Notes: a model not told the origin generated them from the letters alone. DNA of 63,737 nucleotides, filler included, from Choristocarpus tenellus KU-1152 (GCA_964200185.2; 11 parts of 11 records of this genome joined end to end with filler, not necessarily neighbours in it), one strand, 5' to 3'; shown: positions 1-16,288, counted from the first letter of the whole stretch. Numbers and translations: made by a program.

Positions 1-100
1 AATGTCAGCAAAAAAAAGAGTTGTTTTACCGAAACGGACGCCCCCTCACAACCCCCCCCCCTGCCCAGATACTTTGACCCAACATATATTTTTGTTTAAT

Positions 101-1700
101 TTATTCAAAGGAGTTTTTTGTTGCCAGTTGATGGCCCACCCTGTCAACTAGGGACATGGAGGGTCTCTCATTGACAATGCCATGACTGATAACTTTTCTT
201 TGTGCAGGTGACATATCTGCCTTGACTCCCCCACTGCTATGTGCAATGTGTATCCTTCTTCCTGTCCTTAACCTTTTGTTACACCTTTTGCAATCACTCA
301 TCCATGACAATTCAATTCCATATAGTACCCCCGATAGTTTCCACATTCCATAACACACAACATCACAAATTTGAAGCTACTATACTATGCTAATGCTACC
401 TCATTGAAGGGGACAGTGTCGATTGTGGAGTACGTCCTAATTCCAGATTGGTGCAGACATTGGAAGAGTTGGCATAAAACTGATCAAAGAGCTGATACCC
501 AGGTCAGTCAAACAGAAACTCTTCCATTCCTACTGAGTAGTATCCAAATTTTTGTCCCTACTGAACCAAAAGAAAATTGATTCATTTCTAGGTACCATTG
601 CCACAGATCTTTGGACTGGTGCTGCTTTAAGAATTTGGAAAAGTTCAAGTGTGCCAGCAATTGTTGTTGGTAAGAGTGCTATCAACAGGATGAAGATACA
701 ATATTGTGGACAGAGAAGAGCTCATGCACTTCAATGTGTACTTTAAAGTGTAACATTCATGCTTAGAATGTTCAACTTATTGATAGGTCTTTTAGGTTTC
801 ATTTCCTTTGCATGAAACAATGGATCATGTGCATTCTGGAACCTCCCTTGTAAAGGATGTATTCTTATTGGTGCTGCGCAAGTGAACTAATGTTAATGTT
901 TGTGAGAGATAGCACTCAGTCTCTGGTGCTATGTGGCTTGAAAACTATGATATGTATACAGATACAGAATGGTTGGGAGTATGCAAATATCATGGGTTGG
1001 CTATTCACAACAATTCTTGCATCAAACTCAAGCAGTATCCTACAACCGCAAAATATCGAGTAGAAATGTGCTAGTGTGTACTGATACTAGGGCAGGAAGC
1101 AATCATGTGTATCAGACAGATCGTCCAGAATGCTTTCCAAGCTAAAAGCACTATCATGCAATCAGAACCTACAATTTCCCTACTACTGTAGTTCCTGAGG
1201 GTAGGTCTTGGTACATAGTAATCCGGAGCAGATGAGAAAGTGAGTTATCTCACTACCAATACCCCAAAAAGAAGAGTGTTTTGAATGTAGTCCCAGCACA
1301 ATTGTCGTGATGGGAATGAATACTATGTATGCTTCACCAAAACCTTCAAGCACTGATGAAAGTGATACTAGATACCTATCAGTTGAAATCTGCCTCCGGC
1401 ATTTGTGGGTTACAACAACAAAAAATATTTCACTCAAATCAATCTGCTTTAGCTTTCACCCATTTGAACACTCTCAAGTTGTCCACGAAAGTCAATCAAA
1501 TCTCGTCAAACAACTCTTGTGTTTCGCTCTCTACCATACAAAGGTTGACAAAGTGAAGCAATTGCCCAGTTGCCTTGTCTCCACATAGGATATATACAAA
1601 TGTTCGACAGCCATTGACATGTCCAAGAGGTGATACACTTCACAAGGAACCTGATGGTGACGACCCACCACTCTAATTCATCTTACTGAAGGATGCTGCA
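101..1700 (-). mobile_element. Highly degenerate Ty3/gypsy LTR-retrotransposon pol relic (RT-RNase H)
   Basis: Minus-strand fragments lie in pol order with many stops and frameshifts: 'ESILDDLS' (~1140-1115, cf. PRIDDILDxL); 'CICIHIIVFK' (~970-940, cf. CxVYIDDIIVFS); 'KAAPVQ' (~630); 'CYGMWKLSGVLYGIELSWMSDCK' (358-290, cf. RNase H WAIxKFRxYLYGxxFxxxTDCK). Boundaries are approximate. Confidence 0.6.
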
Positions 1701-1957
1701 TTGACCAACCGTGTGCCAGTAGTCAGGGTAAGTGTGTTTTTTAGGGAGTTATGGAAGCTGTCACTGTTGTTTTGAATGGGGTTAATAAAAGGATACACAT
1801 ACTTCCACCTACCTCTACGCGCGCAAACCGCGAGCGAATTGGAGGCTTTTCATCTTTACATAAAAAACGCAAGAACAATGTTTAGGAGGTGAGCGTTCCC
1901 TACCCTTATCCCATCAGAAAGGAAGGTAAAGTCTTGTTTGGAGTAGGATTAGAGACA

Positions 1958-3043
1958 ATGAGAAGCAGCAAAGGCGAGGAGCGGGAAAAAGTGTCGAGAG
2001 GTGGATCTTCAGGAGCAAAGAGGGCTCTGGCTTGTATTGTGCTTTCGACGCTGACAAGCTCGTACGGTTTACTGGTGTCGTTGGGGAAGAACTCCCAAGG
2101 AAAATTTGATTTCGATGTGACAACAATACCATTTGTGTCTGAGATTGTGAAGCTTGTGATATGTATCCTAGCAGTAATGTTTGGGGATGATGGTATGTCG
2201 ACGATAAGGGCTGAAGCGTTCGGGGCAGACCGTGGAAGAATCTTCACCTTCGCTGTTCCTGGATTTCTTTACCTGATGAAGAACTTCATGGATGCTACTT
2301 CGCTGAAGTACATCGATGCTCCCACGTTCCAGCTCCTGGGTAACCTCAAAATTGTAACCACCGCGCTATGTCTTCGCATACTTCTTCAGAAACGATTGAA
2401 TGATGGTAAGTGGGCTGCAGTCCTCCTGCTCTGCTGTAGCTGTTCCATTCAAGTGTCTGGTGACGTCGACTCGTTTGATGCCAGACAGCTCCCTGGTGTG
2501 GTTATGGTTATGCTGGCGTGCCTTTTGTCCAGTCTTGCAGGAGTGTACAACGAGAAGCTGCTTAAGCAGTTTAACACTGTGGGGAGCTCAATTTTCGTGA
2601 ACAACATTTTTCTGTACGGGTGGGGAATTGCATTTAATGCAACTATACGTATGGTTGTTGGTGGTTGGACTGGTGTTGCTGACGTGTTGCAAGGATATAA
2701 CACCTTTGCCTGGCTCGCTGTGGTAAACCATGCCCTAATGGGGCTAACTGTATCATACGTAATATTGCACCTTGACAATCTCGCAAAGCTTTTTGCGGGC
2801 AGTATGGCTATGTTTTCATCGACTTTGCTCTCTGGGTGGCTCATGCAAACAGATGTGACAGTGTTACGATGCCTCACCATACTCTCTGTCAGCATTGCCA
2901 CATATTTCTATGGGGGTAGTACAGGAGAAATGTACTGTGATGACTGTATCACCTCTGTTTTGACTTCATGCTGTACCAGCAGTAGATTGAGAGTTGGAGG
3001 AGGGGATAGAGGGCCAACTTCCAGGGCTAGTGACCATGTCTAG
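1958..3043 (+). CDS. Nucleotide-sugar transporter, SLC35A family (CMP-sialic acid/UDP-Gal transporter-like), apparently intronless
   Basis: Open frame 1889-3043, first in-frame ATG at 1958, about 10 hydrophobic segments. Canonical SLC35A motifs are present: FVSEIVKL, AVPGFLYLMKN, DAPTFQLLGNLKIVTTAL, LSSLAGVYNEKLLK, LDNLAKLFA. Confidence 0.92.
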   Translation: MRSSKGEEREKVSRGGSSGAKRALACIVLSTLTSSYGLLVSLGKNSQGKFDFDVTTIPFVSEIVKLVICILAVMFGDDGMSTIRAEAFGADRGRIFTFAVPGFLYLMKNFMDATSLKYIDAPTFQLLGNLKIVTTALCLRILLQKRLNDGKWAAVLLLCCSCSIQVSGDVDSFDARQLPGVVMVMLACLLSSLAGVYNEKLLKQFNTVGSSIFVNNIFLYGWGIAFNATIRMVVGGWTGVADVLQGYNTFAWLAVVNHALMGLTVSYVILHLDNLAKLFAGSMAMFSSTLLSGWLMQTDVTVLRCLTILSVSIATYFYGGSTGEMYCDDCITSVLTSCCTSSRLRVGGGDRGPTSRASDHV

Positions 3044-3417
3044 TAGGAATGTGAACAAAGTCAGGAAGTAGAGTGTGTTTGGATGTTGTGTTGCAGTTCT
3101 GAATGTTGTACTGTTGTGGGAGAAAGCTCACACCTGATGCAATGTGAGGGTTGGGCAGGATAGGTATAATGGACAAGAGTGGTATTAAGTTGCATACACC
3201 ATGAGCATTTGTGGTGACCGTGTTGTCATAGGATACTTGTGATTGCCAATTTATATTAAGCAATTTTATTATTTTTTGTTCACTTGATCAAGTTTTTGAT
3301 GCAATAGGTCTGACAGAAACTCCCTACATTTGAGATACCCACTACTCAAGAGAGAAGGGACTGTTGCACTTCTTGCTCACTATCTTACACACCTTATATC
3401 ATTCACATCCCTGCAAG

Positions 3418-5472
3418 TCATGATGGTGTTGCACCAACCTTATTATACAAGAGCTCCAGGTAATCCCCTTTCTCAAACACTTTGCAGTGACCACCAACAG
3501 TGGCATCAATGATTGACCTACCAGAATCTTCAAAGACCTTCCGAGCTATTCTGTAGGAGTGCTCACTTTGCTGCAACCCAGCCAGTTGCCAGGTTTCATT
3601 GGCGAAGTATGTTGGATCAAAGTGATTTGGATCTCGTCCATGCATCACCTGAGACTCCCCTGAAGCTCCTGTCTGCTCAAAATGGTGGTCCATTCCCACA
3701 ATCACCACAGTTGTACAGCCAACATAGTAGAGTACCTGCAGGCTAACATATGTAACTGTCCACCCAGTGTTGATTTCTTTTGCAACTTTCTCTGAAAACA
3801 AAGGACTTTCTTTACTGCCCAATGGCTTGAAGTACATCATATTGCGTTCCCGAAGTCCATGACAAGGAAAATTTACCCTCTTCTTTTCTGACACCCATTT
3901 CACTGTGCTGACTGGTAGCAGGTCCCAAATCTGCCCCAGGGATTGTGCTATCACCAATTCATTAACAACAGCATATAGGTCGAGACGAAGGCCATAACGT
4001 TGCAGAGCTAAAAATACCTTATTCATCCCCATTATAGGCCCATCAAACGAATCTTGCCAATCCCACCTCATTGCATTGAGTGAAGGCCCATTTGCCACAA
4101 GGACACATGTCTTGTTCGAGTATCGTCCTTTCAGTTCCCTAGCGAAAATCTGTTTTTCTCCATTGTTCTCTCGTCTCTTGCGCCCACAAGGTTTACGTGA
4201 ACCTCCCTTAGGGCGTCTCAATGTCCTTTGCTCTCGTTCTTGAAGCAAACCCTCACACTGCGAATTGAACCACCAGTCCTGGTCTTCATGTGCCACTGCT
4301 GCCCATGATCTCATCACTGAGGTTTCTTTCAGTTGCACACATCGTTGCACTTGTTGATCAGAGGCCAGACCATGGTGCACAATTGGTGCAAAGTCTGTCA
4401 CTGCTGAAGGAGAAAAACAGTCAGCCACTATCCACATTAACCCCACCAATGAAAAGGCTATACCACTCCATGCCACTGCCACAGTAGGCAGCTCAGAGGT
4501 AGTATTTTGCCCAACATTCTGCATCAAAGACGACGAGTGGGGACCGCTCACACCCTGTAGGTAGTCCACCCGTTCTTTCAGCAAAAGAAATATCCCAACA
4601 GCAGTGCATGCCGAGGCTAGAAATAGCCATGGTGTAGTATCTTCTAATGTCAGTCCTCCAGCCAGTACCAGAGAGAGCACCATCGCAAGGCCACTCGATA
4701 AAACTAGGCCTTGCACACGTTCCATCTGCATGGATGATTGGGAGAGCACCAACTCTGTCATTGCCAAGGTACAGACGGCCATTATCTCTGGAACATTGCA
4801 CCCCGCGGCTAGGTCGGCCAAGCCAGACAGCCCGTTAGTCATTACTCGCGCTACCACCCCCAAGGCAACAGACCATGCGTACATTGACGGGCATGCGCGG
4901 AATCTCCCCCAGCCTACAGTCAAATGAGGTGAGCTGGACCTAGCATCGCGAAGATGGCGCGCCCACGGTGCCAAAGCAGACAAAACGCTTCCAAGAACCA
5001 TTGCCAATGTGCCCCACAATTCGCCTGTCTGATGGTCTAATATCTGTCCCAGTACGATGCAAGAGCATCCGGCAAAGAGAAGACTAGCACCCCATAGGGA
5101 AGGCTTACTGCTATGGGCCACGAAAAGTGGTGCAACAAGAACAATCCTGGCGTGTCGAAGTACCTGGTAGGTTGTGGGAGACAGGTATAGCAGGGATCCC
5201 AAGTCCACAGTGCTAGCCATAAGAAAAATAAAGGCAGCCAATGCAATGGGAAGGCAATTTCCAGGTTTGCCTAGCGCATCTTTTGTATCCCATCGACGTC
5301 CTACAGCCCTTAGCGCACTGGTAACAACGAAGAGCAGGCAATCACGAGCAAGCGGAAGTGCAGTGACATCAAACGGTAGAGAACCTTCAGGTGTCCTTCT
5401 CAAGGACACCAAAATTGCATAAGAGCACATGAGCATTCCTACACTGCATTGTGCTAGCCAATGCGACCTCAT
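3418..5472 (-). CDS. Fusion protein: degenerate SLC35A-like transporter domain + extra TM/stem + C-terminal DUF115 (Maf/MptE-like, GT42-like) putative glycosyltransferase domain; intronless
   Basis: Uninterrupted ORF, open from 5562, first ATG at 5472. The N-terminal ~300 aa align by eye with the neighbouring transporter (SYAILVSL..GSLPFDVTALP vs SYGLLVSL..GKFDFDVTTIP). The C-terminal ~235 aa carry CVLVANGPSL, IMGMNKVF, YAVVNELVI, GWTVTYVSLQVLYYVGCTTVVIVGMDHHF, DPNHFDPTYF and IIDATVGG, typical of bacterial DUF115-type proteins. Confidence 0.85.
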   Translation of the reverse strand: MRSHWLAQCSVGMLMCSYAILVSLRRTPEGSLPFDVTALPLARDCLLFVVTSALRAVGRRWDTKDALGKPGNCLPIALAAFIFLMASTVDLGSLLYLSPTTYQVLRHARIVLVAPLFVAHSSKPSLWGASLLFAGCSCIVLGQILDHQTGELWGTLAMVLGSVLSALAPWARHLRDARSSSPHLTVGWGRFRACPSMYAWSVALGVVARVMTNGLSGLADLAAGCNVPEIMAVCTLAMTELVLSQSSMQMERVQGLVLSSGLAMVLSLVLAGGLTLEDTTPWLFLASACTAVGIFLLLKERVDYLQGVSGPHSSSLMQNVGQNTTSELPTVAVAWSGIAFSLVGLMWIVADCFSPSAVTDFAPIVHHGLASDQQVQRCVQLKETSVMRSWAAVAHEDQDWWFNSQCEGLLQEREQRTLRRPKGGSRKPCGRKRRENNGEKQIFARELKGRYSNKTCVLVANGPSLNAMRWDWQDSFDGPIMGMNKVFLALQRYGLRLDLYAVVNELVIAQSLGQIWDLLPVSTVKWVSEKKRVNFPCHGLRERNMMYFKPLGSKESPLFSEKVAKEINTGWTVTYVSLQVLYYVGCTTVVIVGMDHHFEQTGASGESQVMHGRDPNHFDPTYFANETWQLAGLQQSEHSYRIARKVFEDSGRSIIDATVGGHCKVFEKGDYLELLYNKVGATPS

Positions 5473-5754
5473 GCCCTCTTGGTGTGTAGATACCTTGCAA
5501 TTTCTATTCCTTCCCCTATAACAATAGAGGAAACATCCGATTTGATTTGTGTTTTCTGTCACATAATAAAATATCGTTCATGGAATGTTCGTAAATCATA
5601 TTGATTTTAAATACTAGTAGTATTAGAAGTACTTACTTCTCCACTAGTATTGTACTTGTTTTTGTCAATATTTGTCAATATCGTATTATTTTTGTCTTTT
5701 GTCTGTTAGCATCCTTCAAAACATGACACACTTCCTACCCTCTTGAATTGCAAC
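5473..5754. promoter_or_regulatory. Short divergent intergenic region with an AT-rich core, probable bidirectional promoter
   Basis: About 280 bp separate the ATG of the fusion gene (5472, -) from the ATG of the CreA-like gene (5755, +). The core is AT-rich with a local duplication (tttgtcaata x2). Confidence 0.5.
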
Positions 5755-8140
5755 ATGAAGAAATCTACCCATGTATTGGTGATGCTGTGTTTTGGATGGC
5801 GAGTTGCTTCTGGGTTCTTTCGCTATTCCCCTGTTAGACATAATGAGCCCGTTAATGTCGGCAAGAACACCGTGGTCATGGAGGGAGGGAGGCTTCCGAT
5901 GGCGAAACAACTGCAGAGAGTACTGTCGTCGGCCGCTGTTGGATTTGCCCTCATGGGGCCTATGGTGTTTGACCCTCTCATGGCTCAAGCTTCTCCTAAA
6001 AGAGTCGTTGGGAATATTCCGACGAGCGGTTTGATATTCAAAGTGAGATGCAAGAGAAGAGGTTTGTGAAGGCCGCTTGTTGGTCATTTGACCTTTGAAA
6101 TGGGCAACACACACCCAGCCCCTTCCATTGTGCTCGCTCAATCCAAGCCCCAGGATGCGGTAGTTCTTGAAGCTCCTCGAGCACATGTTAGAGATTACTA
6201 TTACTGTTGATCCCTTGACCTTCTAGGAATGAAGTAAACGAGTCCGTTGCATTGTACTCCATACTCGTTTCCACTGTACCTCAGGATACGCTTAATGTGG
6301 AAGCATTCTCCGATCCGAAGGTAGATGGTGTAACACTATACCTTAGTGACTTCACAAGGCCTGTCTCGGACAAGCTAATGAATGGTGACTTTTTCTCAGG
6401 TAAGTCTGGATTCCTCTAGGAGTGATGGACACGTAATTTCGACCGATGTAGAAAGACGACGCATCTGACAGTTATTGGTACGGACCTGAACTTGCCTTGA
6501 ATGTGTATTACCATCAAAGAGGCCAATTTATTGGAGGGCCGTGTTATGGCCCGGTCTTGGTGGGAAAACTGATGTTATCAGTGGAAGAAAAGGCATACTT
6601 TGACAATGTAGACAGACAGCAATGCCCTGTAGCGATCTCGAATTAGATAAGCTGGCATGTTTTTTAGTACGATGTAGTGTTAAATATCATAGCAGTCTAA
6701 GGCTAGTAAATCTCACAAAGGTGTGATATGCCTGAATGTTTTCTACGATGTTTGTCGGGTAGAAAACCCCAGGCTCACATAGGGACTGGCATCAACATTC
6801 TAGTCCTTGTAACACCTTCAGGACAACCCTGTATGCTTAGCATGAAATAGTCTAGTGTCAATTTGTCTTTGCTAAGTCCAAAAAGTGTAGTTTCATATTA
6901 TTGATTCAATAACCTCTGGAGAAATGCTTTTGGGATAGTGCAACCAATAGGTAAGCTTAGTCTCCACTTTAAAAAAAAACTGAAACAAAATTCAGTTATC
7001 TTTCATGATTGGCAAGCTCCCCTTCACACACACATTCACTCCCTCATGGGCACAGATCCATCGTCAGCTTCGATGACATGTGTGCGGTCAGGGCCAATGA
7101 AGGTTCAGGACGACACTACCACATCTAAAGAGGGGCAGGAGTTATTTAAGGAGGACAGAAGGTTAGCATTACCACCTCATTAGACCACTTCAATATATTC
7201 AGCTGACGTCACCCAATCATCCAATTCCCAACAGTATTGTATTGTTTGTGGATGTGTCACTAACCTCTTACATGTTTTACTCATCCTAAAACATGAAACA
7301 GTCTTGGGATCCTAAGTCATTTTGTGCCTCCGTTGACTTCCTGTACATGATGTGATATGCTGATAGTAAACCTCTACAATGATACTGGCAATGGTGTTTG
7401 TGTGCTGAAATGGATATAGACTTTCTTCATCTAGACCAACGACAGATATGAAACAAACTTGTGAGAAAGAAATTAGTTGGGGAAGTCAGGTATTCCAGAG
7501 GGGTAACAACATGGAAGGCAGAGAAGATTTTGTTGGAAGTGAACCCAGGTAAAAGTACTCATGGTTGCTTTTTCAAGACAATGAAACAACAGATACCTGC
7601 ACAAGGTGCTGTTTCATTGAACTGGAGAAATGTAACTGGTGATAATGAACAGAATTGGCATCGTTGCTATAGCTGGTCAATGAAAAATGCTTGTCTGTTG
7701 GGTATGTAGGCCCTCATTTGCACTCCCACCTCAATGGAGTAAAGACTCTTACTGGACTATTACCAAAAGTACAGAGTCAAAATGAAACTCACCAACCACA
7801 TAATTGAAAGGAAGTCCAGTGACCTCAAGGAAGTGCCAATATCTACACAATACTGAAACAAATATAAGGATGTGCTCTCAACACAATAATGACCCTAGAA
7901 TATAAGACCTTACAATTGCGCTCTCCACTTCAGCATTCTTACCAGCATGCCAACACTCCCATCCCTGCTGCTCCAAATCATTTCTTGTACAGCTTCTTCA
8001 AATCAATTGTAGTGCGCCGGTTGTATGACAAAGAAGAGGGAAACTTGGTTTATGTGGCTTATTCTTCAAAGATTGATCCTAACACAGACAGCAACAAGAG
8101 TCGCTTTAAGAGCTCCTTATGTGCACTGCACATTGAATGA
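5755..8140 (+). CDS. creA: CreA-family protein with bipartite plastid presequence; 4 exons (5755-6042, 6285-6399, 7056-7161, 7993-8140)
   Basis: GT-AG exons join in frame: SGLIFK|DTLNVEAFSDPKVDGVTLYLSDF..FFS|DPSSASMTCVRSGP..GQELFKEDR|SFFKSIVVRRLYDKEEGNLVYVAYSSK..RFKSSLCAL*. These match CreA motifs (DPxVxGVTxY, DPSxASxxC, FKxxxVxRxYD). The N-terminal signal peptide ends ASG|FFRY. Confidence 0.88.
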
Positions 8141-8749
8141 AGGTGGGAGCTCCACCACACTCCTTACGCGAAAAGGTTTGCTGGAGTTATATCCTAGAAC
8201 TGAACTTTCATAGTTCATACTATATAGGGCAATAGAACTGCACAGTGTAGAACACAGAAACAAGAAGGGGCAGCGTCAAGAATTTGAACCCAATGCAATG
8301 TTTGCTGAATATAGAATATTGTGTGATGTTTGAATCAAATGTGTTTTATGTGTGTTTGTGAAGAGAAGCAGGTCAAGTCAACCTTACAAGAATGTTTCAA
8401 ATGAAAATGTGTGGATTTTTTTTGTACCTGCTTCTTCCTTAGGGATTTGGGAAACACTGATGAAACATTTTAAGAGCTTCCAATCTCTACAGTACTTGAA
8501 AGTGAAGTTATATATGTCCAGTATAAACGCACCCTACTGGAACACACATGCTCTCTTAAATCTATCTTTATCAAATGGTGAATCTTGTGTGGTGACAGTA
8601 TGTGCACACTTTTCGATGCAGATAGTACAACTACTACAGCTAGTACAAACTCGTAAGAATCTTTGTATCTCTCATCATCATAGCAACACTTTTGAAGCAA
8701 TGGCCTGCATTATTCAGTACTCCAGCCACAATCTGGAAAATTGAACAAA

Positions 8750-11650
8750 TTACAGAAAAATGGATCTTCTACCAGTGGTGTCCGCTTGGTGATCAGTTTT
8801 GTCATCTGACGTGAATAAGCCTGAGTTCACCTTGAATGGATCCATTGTGTGTTTAAAAAATGTGTCAAGAAATTGTACTAAGAACACATTTTCCACCTTA
8901 ATCCTTGTTATTTTACATTGATTTATATCAATGGATGTATTGGTATGGTCAGCCTGATGGTATATATTGTAGTGCATGCTTAGACATTCAATATTGATGG
9001 AATCACCAAGCCATGACTAGGTTCAAAACTATCCCTGTGAAAAACATAGTGTAACATCCTACTTTTTAAGTCATTGTGATTAGCTTGTTCTGGTCCATTG
9101 TGGTTCCTTCAAGGAAATCAATGAGATGTACTAGGACAAGGTCATGAGGGCACCCTTTTCTGTTTTTGAGGTTCCTCTGAAAACTGTGCAGTGAGGTAGG
9201 TTGCCAGGTACCTCCTCTGATTAATCTGATAGTGGCTTTGTGTTACTTCAAGGTCTCTTCTTTCATGTCCATTTGGCGTATGGACAGTGGAAGTCGGAAT
9301 GCTTGTGTGCGGTCATATACATGATCATAGGCAGACCCTTCCAACCAGTAGTAACTAGTTCATCGTCAACTTGATGAAGCATGTACAACTGAAGGGTGAA
9401 TGTGGTTGCTCTCCCATACTCAGCTGGCCTTGCAATCTAAGGCACAGCATTTTGGAAGGCCAGATAGGAGTTCCTTTGAGATTTCTTGGGAAAACATGTG
9501 TGAAGGACCTTGATTCTAATTAGGATGATGACATTTCCTCCTGCCATATGCTGAGTGCATTGTGCAACATATTCTATATTAAGAGTAGAACTGTGGGTGA
9601 AGAGATAAAAATGTGGAAGATTTCCCAACAATATTGTGCATCTGAATTGAAGGAATCCTCAGAAATCCTCACAAGGATGGGACTTGTGAGTGTGAACCAT
9701 TTCAGTACCAGTCACAATAACATTTATGAAAGTGGGTACAAACAGATAACTAGACATTCTTCCTATCTCATGTGGCATTCATTAGTATCGGCGGGGAGAT
9801 GATGTCACTGTTCGTGTGATCGATATGGGTGTTGTGTGTGATGAGCAATGAATTGAGTTGCTGGACATATTCTTGTCTTATCATCACAACATATTGATGC
9901 TCTGTGTGTGATACCTTGAATCATGTAGAGGTGATTTGTACTGCCCAACTCATTGAGATGACCTCATGCAGACTGTACTCCTGAACCCTAACCCTAACCG
10001 AAGAGAACACATGTACTCCACTGGTCCCTAAAACCCTGTCTGATCCTTGCTGACAGGTACTGCTGTTATGCCCAAATAATGTGTCCTTGTCACTGTTTTG
10101 AGCTCTGATCAATCATTTTTGTACATGAATCCTCTCTTGCTCATTGAAGAATTTGAACCTAGCACTACCTGATAATGTACACTCACTCATGTGTAGCTCT
10201 GGATATGCTCTATAAACCCTATGTATGTAAATGCACTGTTTTGAGGGTCAGTACTAGCTAAATATTATTGTGGATATTTCACTCAGATACAAATTTATAG
10301 AAAGGTCAATGAATTCGAAAAGGGAGATGCAGTTGTTAAAAAAAAATGGAATGTGTTGAACTAGGATAGTGGATTGTTTACAGGTTGACAAAAAGGTATC
10401 TGCTTGGATTGACTCCCTCCTGTACCACTGTCATCCTTGGTTTTTATCTTCAGCACTACCTACAGCCTCAAGCTCCAACCGAACAAGTCGAACCTGTTCA
10501 CATTTTGAGCAAAAAGAAGTTGGATACAGAACGTAAGTTGAATATACCGATTCTAAAATGAGCACATGATATTGTTTTCATTCTCAATTCCATTCGATCA
10601 AAAATGCATTTTTGTGTATCAAGCTTACACAATAAATTTCCAAGAAGGATGCATTGGATCTCATTAGTATGATTGATTGCCTGCCATTAATCATAGCATT
10701 CCTTTAATAATATTGATTAAAGAACTAACCAATAGTTCAAGTGGGGGAATGGAGAGTGGTATTGAGATTCACACTGTAGTACCACTAACCTGCTCCTCAT
10801 AGATAAAATTCTCTCCATTGTCTAATTGCGCTTTCTTTATCTTGCTGAGCATTTCATCAGCAGTCTCCAGGTGTGTCCTGTGTATTGTGCAAAGGGAAGT
10901 TTAAAGAGATTTATTCAAAATATTCAGGACAAAATATCACGTCTTCCCTACCATGGAACTCAACACAACACAAAACACAATTACAAATTAAATCTTGAGC
11001 ATTTCTGTGAAGCACCCTACACCTCAGGCTTTGTACCCACCACAGTTAACATGGTAAAAAGAGTAATTTTTCAGTAAGGCACACCTTGAAGTAGAGTGTA
11101 CAACATCAAAGAGACCTGCTCTGCATAGGTTACTACTATGTAGTACATGACCAAATATGTTACATGCTTTCATCTGATAGTTTGATGAACAGAATCACTA
11201 ACACAATGTTATAGTTTTTGGCAGGTTCAAGGCATTGTTTTTCATGAAACACAAGGTAAGAGAAGCAAAATAATTTCAGCAGAATGGTGTGTTGGATGGT
11301 TTTGGGCAGTGACAAATCAACACCTATTGACTATACTGAAGTTGTTGCAAAATTAACCCTCCAACAAAGGCAGTCTCCAGTCCCTCCAATTCAGATTCTG
11401 CATGTGATATATCTTGGAATATCATGCTAGTATATTTGAAACAACTAAATAGTGATTGTACATGTTTATATTGCAAAGTAGAGTGCAACAGAGCAATAAA
11501 AAAAATAATAATGCAAGGAGCAACAACTCTTGAGGTGACATGAAGTGACATTTGCATTTTTTTGTAAGCTTTTTGTATACACACTATTGTATTGACCTGC
11601 ATATAATATCTCATCATGGGTACCTTACTGACTGACTGGGTTGGTAGCAT
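8750..11650 (-). mobile_element. Highly degenerate Ty3/gypsy pol relic (RT-RNase H-integrase order)
   Basis: Minus-strand remnants: 'MVGKT*YFVLNI' (~10955-10920, cf. GMVGYYRRFVPNF); 'LFGWSLRL*' followed by 'IQADTFLS' (~10485-10385, cf. LARWxLxL..NxxADxLS); 'AYDHVYDRTQAFRLPL' (~9335-9285, cf. integrase PFELVYGRxxRLP); 'PHDLVLVH' (~9150). Boundaries are approximate. Confidence 0.55.
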
Positions 11651-14326
11651 TGTTGGTATGATGTCAACTTCACAACAATGACTTGAATCTTTTCAAAACT
11701 TTGAAAGTAGAACCATTTTGACAAAAAGATATCTTCAAACTAGTACAAAGATAACAGGGAATCAGCACGGTATGACAATAGTTAAAGATATCAACCGATT
11801 TCTTGTCGTGTCTAATGGTAGGCACTACTCAAAAAATTCCAACGATCGTCTCTTTGGGGCAGTATGGAATAATATTAGTGTTACCTGCACGCACTCTACA
11901 GGTAAGTGACTATAGCAAACCCCAAACAAATGAGTGATTATCACCTGTCCAGGCAGATAGCATGGTTGTGATTTGGGTATGACTGCAGGCCGACTCTGTT
12001 AACATACAGTGGTACCACATTTTGATATCATGGAATGTTTGACAGTATTAGGTCAGGTCTTAAAGGGGATTGGTTTTAACCCTGACTATAGTAGTGATAT
12101 CATGAGATGATTTATGGCTCAATGTCTATAATAAGGCTTCTACTCATGGGTGCAACTTTATTCATGGAACATGATGAACACTAGCAATCAGCATTTTTTA
12201 AGTAGAGGAAATCACTCTTTCGTCATCATGAAAAAATGTCAGCAAATCAGCGACCTTTAATTCCATTCAGTGAATAATAAAACTTTATGAGAAATAAAAA
12301 TCATGCATGTATGAGATAGAAGAGATGGGTGTATCAGCCAATGACAAGCCACTAGGCAAGCCAAGGATTTGAATTTTCTTATTATTGGTGCCTGTATTCA
12401 AATCACTGACGGTAAAAGAAGTCACTTGGGCAGTTCTCTTCGAAAAACGTTTTGATTACATTTGATTACATTAGTGAAATGGTTCTGTTCTACCACTAAT
12501 TTGCATGAAAGAAGTGTGGTGAAAGGATAGATCAAGTGACGAGATTGTGCATGTGTGTGTCATGTCAAGTACAGTGCAAAAATAACAATACCCAGCCAAA
12601 AGCCAGCAGTAGGTGGGCGTATCTCATTATGGTATCCTATGCCCATGTTTTTTTTTTTAAGTTAAAACAAGTGTGAAAAAGCTCTTGTGGTCCATTCCTA
12701 CCCCAAAAGCTGTTCAACACAGATTTAAAATGCGCCACCTTGCTCTGCAGTAATTACTTTTAAAAAGTCAAGTCAGGTTTGTACCCCATAATTGGGTCCC
12801 AGTACAATATCTGAGTATAATATCTGACAGCCCTGTTGTGGATGTGTCATAAAATATTGAACCGGTCCAGCTCATAGACTGGTTAGATTGGATCTGCCCC
12901 ATACAGCAAAATAAACATAAAACCCACATAGGTATGATGGTTGTAGTCATGTGTTATCTCATCACACTCTTAATCACAGGACTGCAACATGTCTGTGATC
13001 TCATCAACATTCTTATCACAAAAAATCGATTGCCTACTTTTTATTTACATTACATAATAATAATAAATAAGAACAAGGGTAAGTGGGCGGCATGGTGGTG
13101 ATTACATGTATCCACATACCTAGCAATACCTACTAACATGTTAATATGTTTTTTGGGATTACGCACCTAGCAACCAATGCACCTTTATTATTATATCATT
13201 TTTTTAAATTTCATCATATGATCATACCACACATAGCATCCACACTGTATAGTCTTCTTTACGATCATAAAACTTTGAAATGAACAAGTACAATGCTTTG
13301 ACATGAACAAGTACACTGCTTTGACATGAACAAGTACAGTGCCTGTACTTAGACATAGCAACTGTATGTACCTATTCATTAAAATAACAACTATGGCTTT
13401 ACATCAGAATATATTTATACCTCCCAAGGATATGACTGAGGGCTTAAGGGGAACATAGATAACAATACAAATAGTACCTCTGTTTTATAATTATTGTCTG
13501 TTCACTGCACCAGCTTTAACAACTTCCCAGTAGAATCATAACATCACACCACAGATATTGTTATCAGTAACACCTTTACATTTGCAGCACAACCAAGATT
13601 GCCAAATAACTTGAAACTGCCATCTGGCAATGAAGGCTCAAAGTTAGGGTATTTGAGATACCAATCCCCTGAAAAGACCAACTGTTCAGTCACAAACAGT
13701 TCACGAAAACCTATCGTTGGTTAAAAAACACCGCTTGCAGTGAATTGCCTTGAATGGAATTTGAATGGAATTCATCAACAGTCTTTTCACAGTCAGACTC
13801 ACGATGCTTGTGAAGGGATTGGTGTTAAAAATCGGACAACTTACCAACAAATAGTCCAATTGGAATTTTTCAGTTACATTTAGTTTTCAACTCCTATCCA
13901 ATGATTCAATAATTGGTTATGGGGAATCACTGAGTGGTCATTGCACCTACCAACAGCCATGTGTGTCAAGGAAGACAGACAGCTTCAGATAACCAATTGT
14001 TACACTGCACACACAAGAGGTTGACCCAATATACAGCAAACCTTGGGAGCATAATCCCAACTAGAGGGCATGAAACCCAAGCTATGTCTAAAAAATGCTG
14101 CAAATGTCATTTTAGATCATGTGTCCATGTTGAGGTTAGACTTATTTGATGCAAAAGGTGGAATAACTGACACAAAAGAACCTGTCCTATCCACATGAAT
14201 GACACATGAATGACAAACATTATAAATCTGCTATTGCACTCTTCATCTGAGGCCTCCTTCAAAAGCTACAGAACAGACAATGTCTACAAAACAATGTCTA
14301 CAAAAAAGACATAGTAGGTCAAATCG

Positions 14327-14401
14327 CATAGAAAGTGTTTCATAGAAAGTGTTTCATAGAAAGTGTTTCATAGAAAGTGTTTCATAGAAAGTGTTTCATA
14401 G
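14327..14401. repeat. Perfect 14-bp tandem repeat (CATAGAAAGTGTTT) x5 plus a partial unit
   Basis: Read directly; no spacers between units. Confidence 0.95.
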
Positions 14402-14861
14402 TCGTGGGAAGGATGTCACCAATACAAAATATGCATACTGGTAAAAGTAAGGTACGTACTTGGCAGTTTTTCCGTTTCAAAAACCAAAGTTATAGTACAT
14501 GCCATCTTATATTTGCATGTGTAAGCTCTAGATGTGAAGTGGTTGTGTACATCTAGGGACTACATCTAGGGACTACAATTGATAACCGCTCCATGCAATG
14601 TACATGTCAGTATTTTGATCTGCTTTCTAGACCTCCAAGAGACCCTCCTCCACCTGGCCAGCATATCTAAAACAAAATCAGCCCAACTCCTTCTACAACA
14701 TAACCTTTTGAACTTTGAACTGCTATTCTTCATTTAACCCTAACCCTTAGCAACAAGTACAGCGCCAGAATCCTAAGTGTAACCATAACCAATTATTGCA
14801 TTGAAACTGTATCAAATACCAATTACACCACATGTAACACATGGAACACTTACAAACTTAC

Positions 14862-14974
14862 CTTGCACTTTTAAGATCTGGGGGCTCCATCCTCAGAAAT
14901 CCAACACCCAAAAGATACCAAATCTCCACATTTTCGTCATCTTCTTGCATGAGGTCCCACAGTAAATCAAGTCC
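14862..14974 (-). CDS. Internal exon of an ACL4-like (Rpl4 assembly chaperone) TPR protein; rest of gene not resolved
   Basis: 113-nt exon flanked by AG and GTAAGT, encoding GLDLLWDLMQEDDENVEIWYLLGVGFLRMEPPDLKSA. This resembles the Acl4 motif LLxEDDxxVExWYLLG. Confidence 0.6.
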
Positions 14975-16288
14975 CTGGTGAAGTGTGAAGTGTCATGGCA
15001 ATGCAGAGGCAAATGTTGTTATTCCTACTTGTTTATTGCTCAAGGGGCAAAAATACTACTAATACTTACCAGGACTTTTAAAATATACTTGGTTGCAGTA
15101 TTCGAGTTATACTTGTGGATAGTGACTGGCAACAATTCTAAAGACAAAAATGACTATGATATATGACTGATACAAACTTGTACCAATATATTACTGAACC
15201 TCTTTGTTTTTGATGTTCCCCACACTTGTATATCATACACAGTGTATTTATGAATGAAGACCATGTCCACTGCAATGATCATACTCTACTAGACAAAGGT
15301 TACAAAGACTCACGAGAATTAACATGTACTTTACACCTACAGGTAGATACACATCCCACCATCTCATCACACAAATATCCTACTATTTATTAACAATGAG
15401 TTTTGTGTTTTTCCTTTATTAGGGATAAATTGAGATCTCTGCGGCTGTTGAGAGCTTCACTCCAAGTGCCTTAAAATGAATGTCTGCAACAGTGGTACAT
15501 CCTTTTCCAACCGAATACTTGCTGCCTTCTGAAAAAAAAAGGATTGTCTGGTGTAGCATAAAAACTTCTAAATGTGGTCTTGAATGTCAATGAAAATGTA
15601 AGTAATAAAAACCCTTTCATTTTTACTTTTATTTATTTTATTGATGAGGGTTGGAACATCGTTCATTTACTTTTATTTACTTTGGTGTCACTGGACAACC
15701 ACACAAACCATCCTGCAAGTATGGTATACATATGGTATATATACATTTAAAATAAAAATTGAAGGAGGGGATGGGGTTGTGGAGGTGATATAGAAAGGCA
15801 ACGACAGTGCGCGAGACAGGCAGGGGCAAGGAACAAATATAAGTGGAGGGATTAACCCAGCTCTAGGAATAGATACACCGGTCTCAATTTCACAGAATGG
15901 AGAAGGATGGATAGAGAACAGAATGAGCCCACATGGGGATGAGGTGGAGGTGATCGAGGATGGGAATGGCGGCTCAAGAGATAGGCACGGGCAAGGGGGG
16001 AACATAAGCAGAGCACACCACTCCACTTTGGAAATAGGTAGACATAATTCGTCTCAGAAGAATGGCGAAGCCCAGACGGAAAATCGAACGAGTACCCAAG
16101 GGGAGGTGGTAGAGGTGGTAGAGGTGGTAGAGGCACACAGCAATGGTAGCAGGGAGAGATGGAGTCGGAGAGGTGGTAGAGGCACACAACAATGGTAGCA
16201 GGGAGAGGGACCCGCCCCTACACGGCTTTGAGGAGGAGGAGGCAGGAGAGGAGGTGATAAGAGATATTACGGGGCTTCGAAGGCCAGC

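Follow-up and report, generated by a model that had tools for sequence, protein, structure and literature searches.

A 63,737-nucleotide stretch of DNA from Choristocarpus tenellus KU-1152 (GCA_964200185.2), hereafter the window, joined with filler from 11 records of the genome, carries two convergent open reading frames, ORF1 and ORF2. ORF1 encodes a predicted nucleotide-sugar transporter of the cytidine monophosphate (CMP)-sugar type, and ORF2 encodes a single chain in which a diverged copy of this transporter is followed by an additional transmembrane (TM) helix, a stem and a Maf/MptE-like domain (PF01973, DUF115). We interpret the locus as a glycosylation locus, an expressed pair descended from an old transporter–enzyme fusion that was later duplicated, with ORF1 feeding the enzyme domain of ORF2, and we assign this reading a probability of about 0.6. 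The component parts are of known kinds, namely an SLC35A-type transporter and a Maf/DUF115 enzyme. An earlier note, made from the sequence of this DNA, knew of no description of the architecture. We likewise found no paper in the open-access literature on a covalent transporter–glycosyltransferase fusion or on a eukaryotic or algal DUF115 branch, but the fusion is already present in public protein sets, as the Triparma hypothetical proteins TrVE_jg10508 and TL16_g12069.

Reality of the ORF2 fusion

The locus lies on the first piece of the window (1-16288, contig C846), which derives from a 164 Mb assembly of 27,310 contigs. The stop codons of ORF1 and ORF2 are separated by 374 bp; the earlier note had placed the pair correctly, with a spacing of approximately 375 bp, and all the peptide strings that it quoted are present. 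Two sequencing runs bear on the integrity of the locus. Run X1 contains an identical DNA contig of 14.3 kb, which is possibly the source data. Run X2 behaves as RNA: depth is nil between genes, and the neighbouring gene shows a GT..AG joint (6042-6285). One of its contigs (record 3) covers 2005-3285, comprising ORF1 and its 3' untranslated region (UTR), and another of 2160 nt (record 4) covers 3259-5418, running unspliced through the transporter-like domain, TM11, the stem and the enzyme domain. Both contigs agree with the description of the two genes as intronless, and the second is the RNA-like sequence across both ORF2 domains that the earlier note had suggested seeking.

The nearest public relative for both proteins is the brown alga Discosporangium mesarthrocarpum, in which the same convergent pair is found, so the pair is conserved in a related ochrophyte. 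The Discosporangium transporter (P0011) is approximately 69–70% identical to ORF1, and 237 bp past it a convergent ORF encodes PF01973, which the annotation lists on its own as a protein of 249 aa. Immediately upstream of this exon lies an ORF of 435 codons for the equivalent degenerate transporter with TM11 and the stem, and a phase-1 GT..AG intron of approximately 190 nt connects the two in frame. The public 249-aa model (CAXNAE020000479.1; L019:9995-12273) omits the upstream ORF.

A second occurrence of the fusion is provided by Triparma. In Triparma verrucosa, PF04142 and PF01973 reside in one public protein (TrVE_jg10508, denoted P0002), and T. laevis TL16_g12069 has the same fusion architecture. 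On the T. verrucosa contig, a single exon encodes TM6–10, the tail, TM11, the stem and the beginning of the enzyme; the exons upstream of it align collinearly with ORF1, and an in-frame GT..AG intron joins two annotated gene models. On BRXX01000501.1 (L011:7092-9664), two adjacent models, with lengths of 179 aa and 531 aa, appear to be parts of a single gene; the 179-aa model reads past a GTGAGG donor to a stop, and an intron at approximately 7765-7999 joins the two in frame. No separate adjacent transporter copy was seen on the T. verrucosa contig.

The RNA-like contig, the Discosporangium pair and the Triparma fusion together establish that the ORF2 fusion is not an artefact. The fragmentation of the assembly would favour an assembly chimera, one of the ways in which the earlier note considered that the fusion might fail, or a decaying pseudogene. 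Nevertheless, the 684-codon frame is open, the RNA-like contig crosses the junction, the 14.3-kb contig recurs identically in another run (which may be the source data), and both Discosporangium and Triparma have the same part order. The rate of nonsynonymous difference also lies far below the synonymous rate, as described below. We therefore regard a chimera or pseudogene as exceedingly improbable.

The intact transporter ORF1

ORF1 matches PF04142 over its whole length with 150.2 bits (cut-off 27; E = 9.6e-44) and TIGR00803 with 72.6 bits (cut-off 55.85). Its closest solved structure is the maize CMP-sialic acid transporter (CST; 6I1R, E = 8.9e-39). In mouse CST, the contacts to CMP are made by Lys55, Lys124, Asn210, Tyr214, Ser261 and Lys272, and carriers of uridine diphosphate (UDP)-sugars have Gly and Ala where CST has Tyr214 and Ser261 (PMC6508934). 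In the alignment, all six contact residues are identical in ORF1. The genome holds a second SLC35A-like gene, which is intronless (C9079:1186-2253) and gives the top PF04142 match of the genome (E = 1.3e-87); its product carries Gly in place of Tyr214 and Ala in place of Ser261 and is of the UDP-sugar type. Because ORF1 keeps all six CST contacts, in contrast to the Gly/Ala pair of this paralogue, it is assigned specifically to the CMP type. The family match and the contact residues bear out the proposal that ORF1 retains the SLC35A signature, and they support its identification as an intact SLC35A/CST-type transporter for which CMP-sugar transport is predicted.

The transporter-like domain of ORF2

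Residues 6–280 of ORF2 align with ORF1 at 28% identity over 291 aa (BLASTP, E = 1e-21), and the two domains are mutual best paralogues in the 164-Mb genome, ahead of the C9079 gene, confirming the paralogy of the membrane domains that had been noticed by eye. The ORF2 domain is strongly diverged at the substrate site: four of the six CMP contacts have been substituted (K55 by Leu, K124 by Arg, N210 by Cys and K272 by Gly), and Y214 and S261 are kept. The position of Y214 is occupied by Tyr in ORF2 and by Cys in the Discosporangium orthologue. The statement that the signature had been lost was correct in substance, with one detail to correct: the key Tyr lies in the NIFLY stretch and not in the GVY motif. 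The expectation of PF04142 on both proteins held for ORF1 only, as residues 1–300 of ORF2 gave no PF04142 match at E <= 1 and no NCBIfam match.

Despite these substitutions, the diverged copy retains an open frame and its membrane pattern, as had been observed. Hydropathy and model helices agree on ten TM segments followed by an eleventh, in line with the predicted 10+1 arrangement. An AlphaFold model of residues 1–384, built on a shallow alignment, is of low confidence (predicted local distance difference test (pLDDT) 58, predicted TM-score (pTM) 0.55); the best 37 Foldseek matches of this model are all drug/metabolite transporter or nucleotide-sugar transporter folds, with maize and mouse CST first. 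Conservation relative to Discosporangium is uneven among the helices, being highest in TM4 (13/20 positions) and among the lowest in TM10 (9/28), which is also the helix least like ORF1 (2/28). Charged residues that are new within the helices are common to both species, comprising an Arg-Asp pair in TM2, His and Arg in TM4, and Glu in TM8.

Topology of ORF2

Beyond TM10, ORF2 runs through one more TM segment and a stem into the DUF115 domain, as first described. The linker at residues 301–330 is poorly conserved, with 1 of 19 aligned positions identical to Discosporangium, and it is modelled with a pLDDT below 50. TM11 has a hydropathy of 2.07 over its 19 residues (331–349) and corresponds to a model helix at 328–352; Triparma P0002 has an equivalent helix in the same place (217–235). 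The linker and TM11 together appear nearly free to vary relative to Discosporangium, with 24% aa identity and a nonsynonymous difference (pN) of 0.54, for which the ratio of nonsynonymous to synonymous rates (omega) is not calculable. The stem is modelled at a pLDDT of 53–65 and contains a W...W...C motif that recurs in Discosporangium, in Picozoa P0015 and in Corallochytrium P0018 and P0019.

Both the N- and C-termini of CST are cytosolic (PMC6508934). Since TM11 adds one crossing, the stem and enzyme would lie on the opposite side of the membrane, and we infer that the enzyme domain of ORF2 faces the lumen. This placement matches the architecture of Corallochytrium P0018, which has a single N-terminal hydrophobic helix followed by a stem in a type-II-like manner. 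Cysteine conservation in the eukaryote-like subgroup (12 sequences, several of them unassigned metagenomic) agrees with it as well.

The enzyme domain of ORF2

PF01973 was found on the C-terminal part of ORF2, as had been expected, at residues 443–600 with 36.2 bits (cut-off 34.6). A six-frame search of the genome scored it at 38.7 bits and returned this domain as the only PF01973 match. Word-indexed homologue searches recovered only a handful of relatives, in keeping with how they are designed, and a full HMMER pass of the C-terminal domain over 1.84 billion representatives was needed. This search yielded 2,691 relatives at E <= 0.001, of which 144 with the same Pfam domain were at E <= 1e-30. 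The nearest relatives are eukaryotic, for example from Picozoa and Corallochytrium. In the bacterial relatives, the domain is fused to glycosyltransferase (GT) modules of families GT2 and GT4, to FkbM methyltransferase or to tetratricopeptide repeat modules. All 14 invariant columns and 24 near-invariant columns of an alignment of 48 homologues include the ORF2 residue, and the motifs NGPSL, GMDHHF and DPNHFD are among them.

The AlphaFold 2 model based on the 48-homologue alignment is confident (pLDDT 86.6, pTM 0.82). Structural comparison with VIA-align placed the Magnetospirillum Maf protein 5MU5 at the top (Z = 14.7, 204 residues, root-mean-square deviation 3.5), followed by the archaeal MptE hydroxymethylpterin pyrophosphokinase (HPPK; Z = 12.3) and the sialyltransferases CstII (12.1) and Cst-I (11.7). 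GT29 sialyltransferases scored approximately 10 and thiamine pyrophosphokinases 8–9, and below 8 the scores drop clearly, down to approximately 5 for unrelated folds. In sequence comparisons, neither PF06002 nor PF00777 matched ORF2 at E <= 1, sialylmotifs were not found by Pfam, and a search of the PDB with the enzyme domain gave no match at E <= 10. Because the best fold match is Maf and the invariant columns are kept, the modelled domain is of the Maf type with a sialyltransferase fold; with no such sequence match, it is not a sequence-level member of GT42 or GT29. Accordingly, the earlier designation as GT42-like holds for the fold (Maf 14.7, CstII 12.1) and not for family membership by sequence.

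The Pfam name MptE hints at a different activity, in which the C-terminal domain would be a pyrophosphokinase-like enzyme, and the Z-scores of MptE HPPK and the thiamine pyrophosphokinases give this reading a fold match nearly equal to that of CstII. However, the top fold match is a glycosyltransferase, and the bacterial relatives, which are fused to GT2, GT4 and FkbM methyltransferase domains, occur in polysaccharide-type clusters. The eukaryotic members show the signal anchor and stem that characterise Golgi enzymes, and in three settings a nucleotide-sugar transporter is found fused to, or linked with, this domain. A pyrophosphokinase is therefore very unlikely, and a putative Maf-type glycosyltransferase is the assignment that we retain.

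Evolutionary history of the pair

In a maximum-likelihood tree, a single clade unites ORF1 and the N-terminal domain of ORF2 with their Discosporangium orthologues and with the Triparma transporter halves (support 100/100, or 97/96 with an extra outgroup). The ORF1 branches are very short, and a long stem leads to the ORF2 domain. The transporter half of the Triparma fusion retains every one of the six CMP contacts. The tail of ORF1 past TM10 resembles the Triparma tail that leads to TM11. The enzyme domain is 74% identical to that of Discosporangium and 51% identical to that of Triparma. Among the 150 best representatives of the enzyme domain, only the window and the Triparma proteins have a transporter part, and hence the fusion is rare.

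Selection was estimated between the window and Discosporangium, where synonymous sites are saturated (synonymous difference, pS, of approximately 0.7), so that the omega values are rough and probably overestimates. ORF1 has a pN of 0.19 and an omega of approximately 0.09, and the enzyme domain has a pN of 0.16, with omega not calculable. The degenerate transporter domain has a pN of 0.38 against a pS of 0.67, at 44% aa identity, giving an omega of approximately 0.3 at most, and it evolves 2.5–3 times faster than ORF1 and the enzyme domain. Neutral evolution of this domain had been named as a possible failing of the earlier proposal; judged from these divergence estimates, its evolution is relaxed yet clearly not neutral.

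The intact transporter half in Triparma replaces the notion of a pseudo-transporter accompanied by a helper with that of an old fusion that was later duplicated. In such a history, an active transporter–enzyme fusion would have existed before the split between the brown-algal and bolidophyte (Triparma) lineages. The transporter part would then have been duplicated in inverted orientation in the brown-algal lineage. The free copy, ORF1, would have remained under strong constraint with its transport kept. The fused copy would have lost four of the six CMP contacts and evolved faster, still under purifying selection. An ancestral fusion before the split with duplication afterwards is probably the correct order, a direction of evolution that we read from the sequence comparisons.

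Supply link and donor sugar

We propose that ORF1 would import an activated sugar that the lumenal enzyme domain of ORF2 would transfer, the best guess for the donor being a CMP-linked acidic sugar of the 3-deoxy-D-manno-octulosonate (Kdo) or nonulosonate type. The Triparma fusion and the conserved adjacency of ORF1 and ORF2 are the grounds for assigning the supply of this enzyme to the transporter clade. Maf enzymes of PF01973 use CMP-nonulosonates, CMP-N-acetylneuraminic acid and CMP-Kdo (bioRxiv 10.1101/2020.06.03.131540).

Further indications on the donor come from metagenomes. A scan with ORF2 alone found nothing, and a scan with the subfamily alignment found 19 loci, with a transporter beside the enzyme gene in one of them only, denoted L030 (ERZ807291 NODE-13056, 182-5642). 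This compact, intronless cluster, with approximately 40% G+C, holds within 5.6 kb a cytidylyltransferase–2-hydroxyacid dehydrogenase fusion, a PF01973 fragment that is split or frameshifted, a transporter matching PF04142, an unassigned ORF of approximately 370 codons and a PF01973 gene (P0020). Its transporter has Tyr at the 214 position, and the full enzyme gene is 43% identical to ORF2; the cluster thus contains two enzymes of the ORF2 subfamily, 43–58% identical. A giant virus and a small eukaryote are candidate origins of L030. In bacterial-looking metagenomic loci (L020:6577-13165 and L021), PF01973 forms a trio with a cytidylyltransferase and a 2-hydroxyacid dehydrogenase beside GT2 genes, and the presence of the dehydrogenase is suggestive of a CMP-activated acid sugar of an unusual kind. 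The CMP-type residues in ORF1 and Triparma, the donors of Maf enzymes, the L030 cluster and the unrelated bacterial cluster together point to a CMP-activated acidic donor, which we consider plausible. The supply link is the most likely arrangement, and this donor class is the hypothesis that goes with it.

Several observations weigh against the proposed history and function. The tree does not order ORF1, the ORF2 domain and the Triparma halves within the transporter clade, and the brown-algal and Triparma fusions may have arisen independently, given the few sequences available. The PF01973 cut-off is exceeded by just 1.6 bits, the fold is also common to pyrophosphokinases, as the MptE HPPK match shows, and the eukaryotic PF01973 subfamily consists of putative enzymes. 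The type of run X2 is not on record, its RNA-like character being deduced from its behaviour; contigs cannot prove a single transcript or its true ends, and the X2 contig ends 54 nt before the proposed ATG of ORF2. Furthermore, no CMP-sugar synthetase (PF02348, TIGR00466), NeuB or KdsA was found above threshold in the genome, the searches with PF02348, PF03102, PF00793, TIGR00466 and the L030 cytidylyltransferase being negative or sub-threshold. The sole trace is a 35-residue KdsB-like exon matching PF02348 with 21.2 bits (cut-off 22.6; E = 0.02). This exon lies on the minus strand of a 2.2-kb contig (C15888:613-717), starts with a KdsB-type nucleotide-binding motif and may represent exon 1 of a CMP-sugar synthetase gene that the end of the contig truncates. 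Since the assembly is fragmented and the search proceeded exon by exon, the missing donor genes are weak evidence, but they give the proposed donor no backing from this genome.

Role of the diverged transporter domain

Three roles can be envisaged for the diverged copy in ORF2, and the architecture and its origin stand whichever of them applies. In the first, the domain would be a multi-span membrane anchor or Golgi-retention leftover of the ancestral fusion, without transport or contact with ORF1, the adjacency of the genes being a relic of the duplication. The loss of substrate residues, the relaxed constraint and the almost unconstrained linker and TM11 fit such a role, as does the relative P0018, whose enzyme manages with one N-terminal hydrophobic helix. 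Nonetheless, ten in-frame helices at 44% identity over saturated synonymous divergence exceed the needs of a plain anchor, charged residues are conserved within the helices, and a simple anchor could replace the domain, as in other lineages. We entertain the anchor as a tentative possibility.

In the second, the fused domain would transport a changed substrate or counter-substrate for its own enzyme, and ORF1 would serve others. Purifying selection on the domain, the retained 10-helix fold, the positive charge kept as Arg at the K124 position in both species and the new intrahelical charges shared by both in TM2, TM4 and TM8 are consistent with this role, and so is the high conservation of TM4. 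Against it, the phosphate- or base-binding lysines K55 and K272 and also N210 are lost, the Y214 position is variable between the two species, the domain does not reach the Pfam family model at all, and it evolves 2.5–3 times faster than ORF1. An altered transporter is accordingly doubtful.

The third is the role proposed in the earlier note, in which the non-transporting domain would heterodimerise with ORF1, hold the lumenal enzyme at the transporter exit and channel a CMP-ulosonate. The two domains are mutual closest paralogues that are still adjacent in two species despite saturated synonymous sites, and the ORF2 domain is constrained though four of the six substrate contacts are gone. Triparma joins an intact transporter to the enzyme in one chain, and proximity thus seems to be selected. 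Mammalian transporters are also reported to assemble with each other and with glycosyltransferases (PMC6453868). A complex prediction of ORF1 (residues 18–330) with ORF2 (residues 1–300), run without controls, gave a score of 0.00 and argues neither for nor against binding. TM10 is an interface helix in Vrg4 crystal dimers. In ORF2, by contrast, this helix is poorly conserved between species and is the least ORF1-like, and the best-kept helix, TM4, lines the substrate cavity; its conservation is more easily reconciled with a retained cavity function than with a docking surface. Purified human CST is, moreover, monomeric (PMC6508934). Taken together, the helix conservation, the CST monomer and the new charges lean slightly, as weak evidence, towards a cavity function or structural role and away from a TM5/TM10-type interface. 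We thus rate docking to ORF1 as unlikely. The fuller version, in which a substrate-blind copy became a dedicated docking subunit of a fixed transporter–transferase machine, evolved from a self-sufficient fusion of the Triparma kind, is improbable to the same degree.

Features of the locus

The positions of the features are collected in Table 1. At the convergent junction, the 3' ends of the ORF1 and ORF2 RNA-like contigs abut or overlap by approximately 27 nt (3259-3285), at similar k-mer depth, and overlapping 3' UTRs of the two transcripts are possible. The gene adjoining the 5' end of ORF2 (5716-6400, minus strand) has a 242-nt GT..AG intron; its joint at 6042-6285 occurs in a spliced contig of run X2, alongside a low-depth unspliced contig. 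The ORFs of this gene matched no Pfam family, and a Pfam scan of six other ORFs of the window likewise gave no match.

Table 1. Positions of ORF1, ORF2 and their parts, counted from the first letter of the window
Feature	Position	Strand	Description	Basis
ORF1	1958-3043	+	Intronless coding sequence, 361 aa + stop from first ATG; CMP-sugar-type (SLC35A1/CST-like) nucleotide-sugar transporter (predicted)	
ORF1 3' UTR (as far as RNA-like contig extends)	3044-3285	+		Run X2 contig 2005-3285
ORF2 3' UTR	3259-3417	-		Run X2 contig 3259-5418
ORF2	3418-5472	-	Single open frame, 684 aa + stop from first ATG; 11-TM fusion protein	
ORF2 residues 1-300	4573-5472	-	Diverged 10-TM transporter-like domain, sister paralogue of ORF1	BLASTP to ORF1
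ORF2 residues 301-330	4483-4572	-	Linker after TM10, putatively cytosolic	Low conservation, pLDDT < 50
ORF2 residues 331-349	4426-4482	-	TM11, signal anchor of enzyme domain	Hydropathy and model helix
ORF2 residues 350-440	4153-4425	-	Stem, W...W...C motif then basic stretch	Motif recurs in relatives
ORF2 residues 441-684	3421-4152	-	Maf/MptE-like (PF01973, DUF115) domain, putative lumenal glycosyltransferase	Pfam, AlphaFold 2 model, VIA-align

Implications and comparison with known systems

Fixed complexes of transporters and enzymes in the Golgi are still debated, mostly from mammalian data obtained by Förster resonance energy transfer (FRET) and bimolecular fluorescence complementation (BiFC). 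A natural fusion of a CST-type transporter with a putative lumenal transferase provides independent genetic evidence for selected proximity. The fusion is present in at least two ochrophyte lineages, and the phyletic spread seen so far is narrow. It further makes a single-chain object available for structural and transport-coupled assays. In the brown-algal version, the matched pair of a predicted active copy and a diverged fused copy can provide a test of catalytically dead SLC35 paralogues as scaffolds, a role that has been proposed for orphan SLC35 members (PMC6709370). Were docking true, ORF2 would represent a pseudo-transporter scaffold of natural origin, through which a CMP-activated acidic sugar is passed directly to a lumenal enzyme. 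More broadly, the locus points to an uncharacterised, widespread eukaryotic Maf/DUF115 branch in stramenopiles, Picozoa and Corallochytrium, and it gives a hint that algae may contain sugars of the Kdo or nonulosonate type. We know of no report of such sugars in these algae, although no search was made.

Compared with the CMP-sialic acid transporters (SLC35A1; maize CST 6I1R and mouse CST 6OH2-4), ORF1 shares PF04142 and the six contacts, whereas its substrate specificity is a prediction from residues. The N-terminal domain of ORF2 has the same fold, but four of the six contacts are missing from it, it does not match the Pfam model, and a further helix and an enzyme domain follow at its C-terminus.

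The enzyme domain shares with the Maf flagellin glycosyltransferases the Pfam family, the top fold match and an NGPSL-type nucleotide-binding start. It is, however, only approximately 11% identical in sequence to Maf 5MU5 and belongs to a separate large subfamily, that of the 2,691 relatives. Maf proteins are cytoplasmic and bacterial, with flanking domains that bind flagellin, whereas the ORF2 domain is eukaryotic, membrane-anchored and probably lumenal. With CstII and Cst-I of GT42 and with GT29, it shares the modified GT-A fold but not sequence membership.

The Triparma fusions have the same part order as ORF2, running from transporter through tail, extra helix and stem to PF01973, and their transporter halves fall in the clade of ORF1 and the ORF2 domain. 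They differ in that the transporter half is intact and, in T. verrucosa, in that the gene is annotated as two models. The mammalian Golgi assemblies of SLC35A3 with MGATs are reported to embody the same idea of a transporter beside the enzyme that uses its cargo (PMC6453868). Those assemblies consist of separate proteins documented by FRET and BiFC, whereas the algal link takes the form of a gene fusion, a Rosetta-stone case, together with a conserved neighbouring paralogue. SLC35A2 is a further known partner in such mammalian assemblies.

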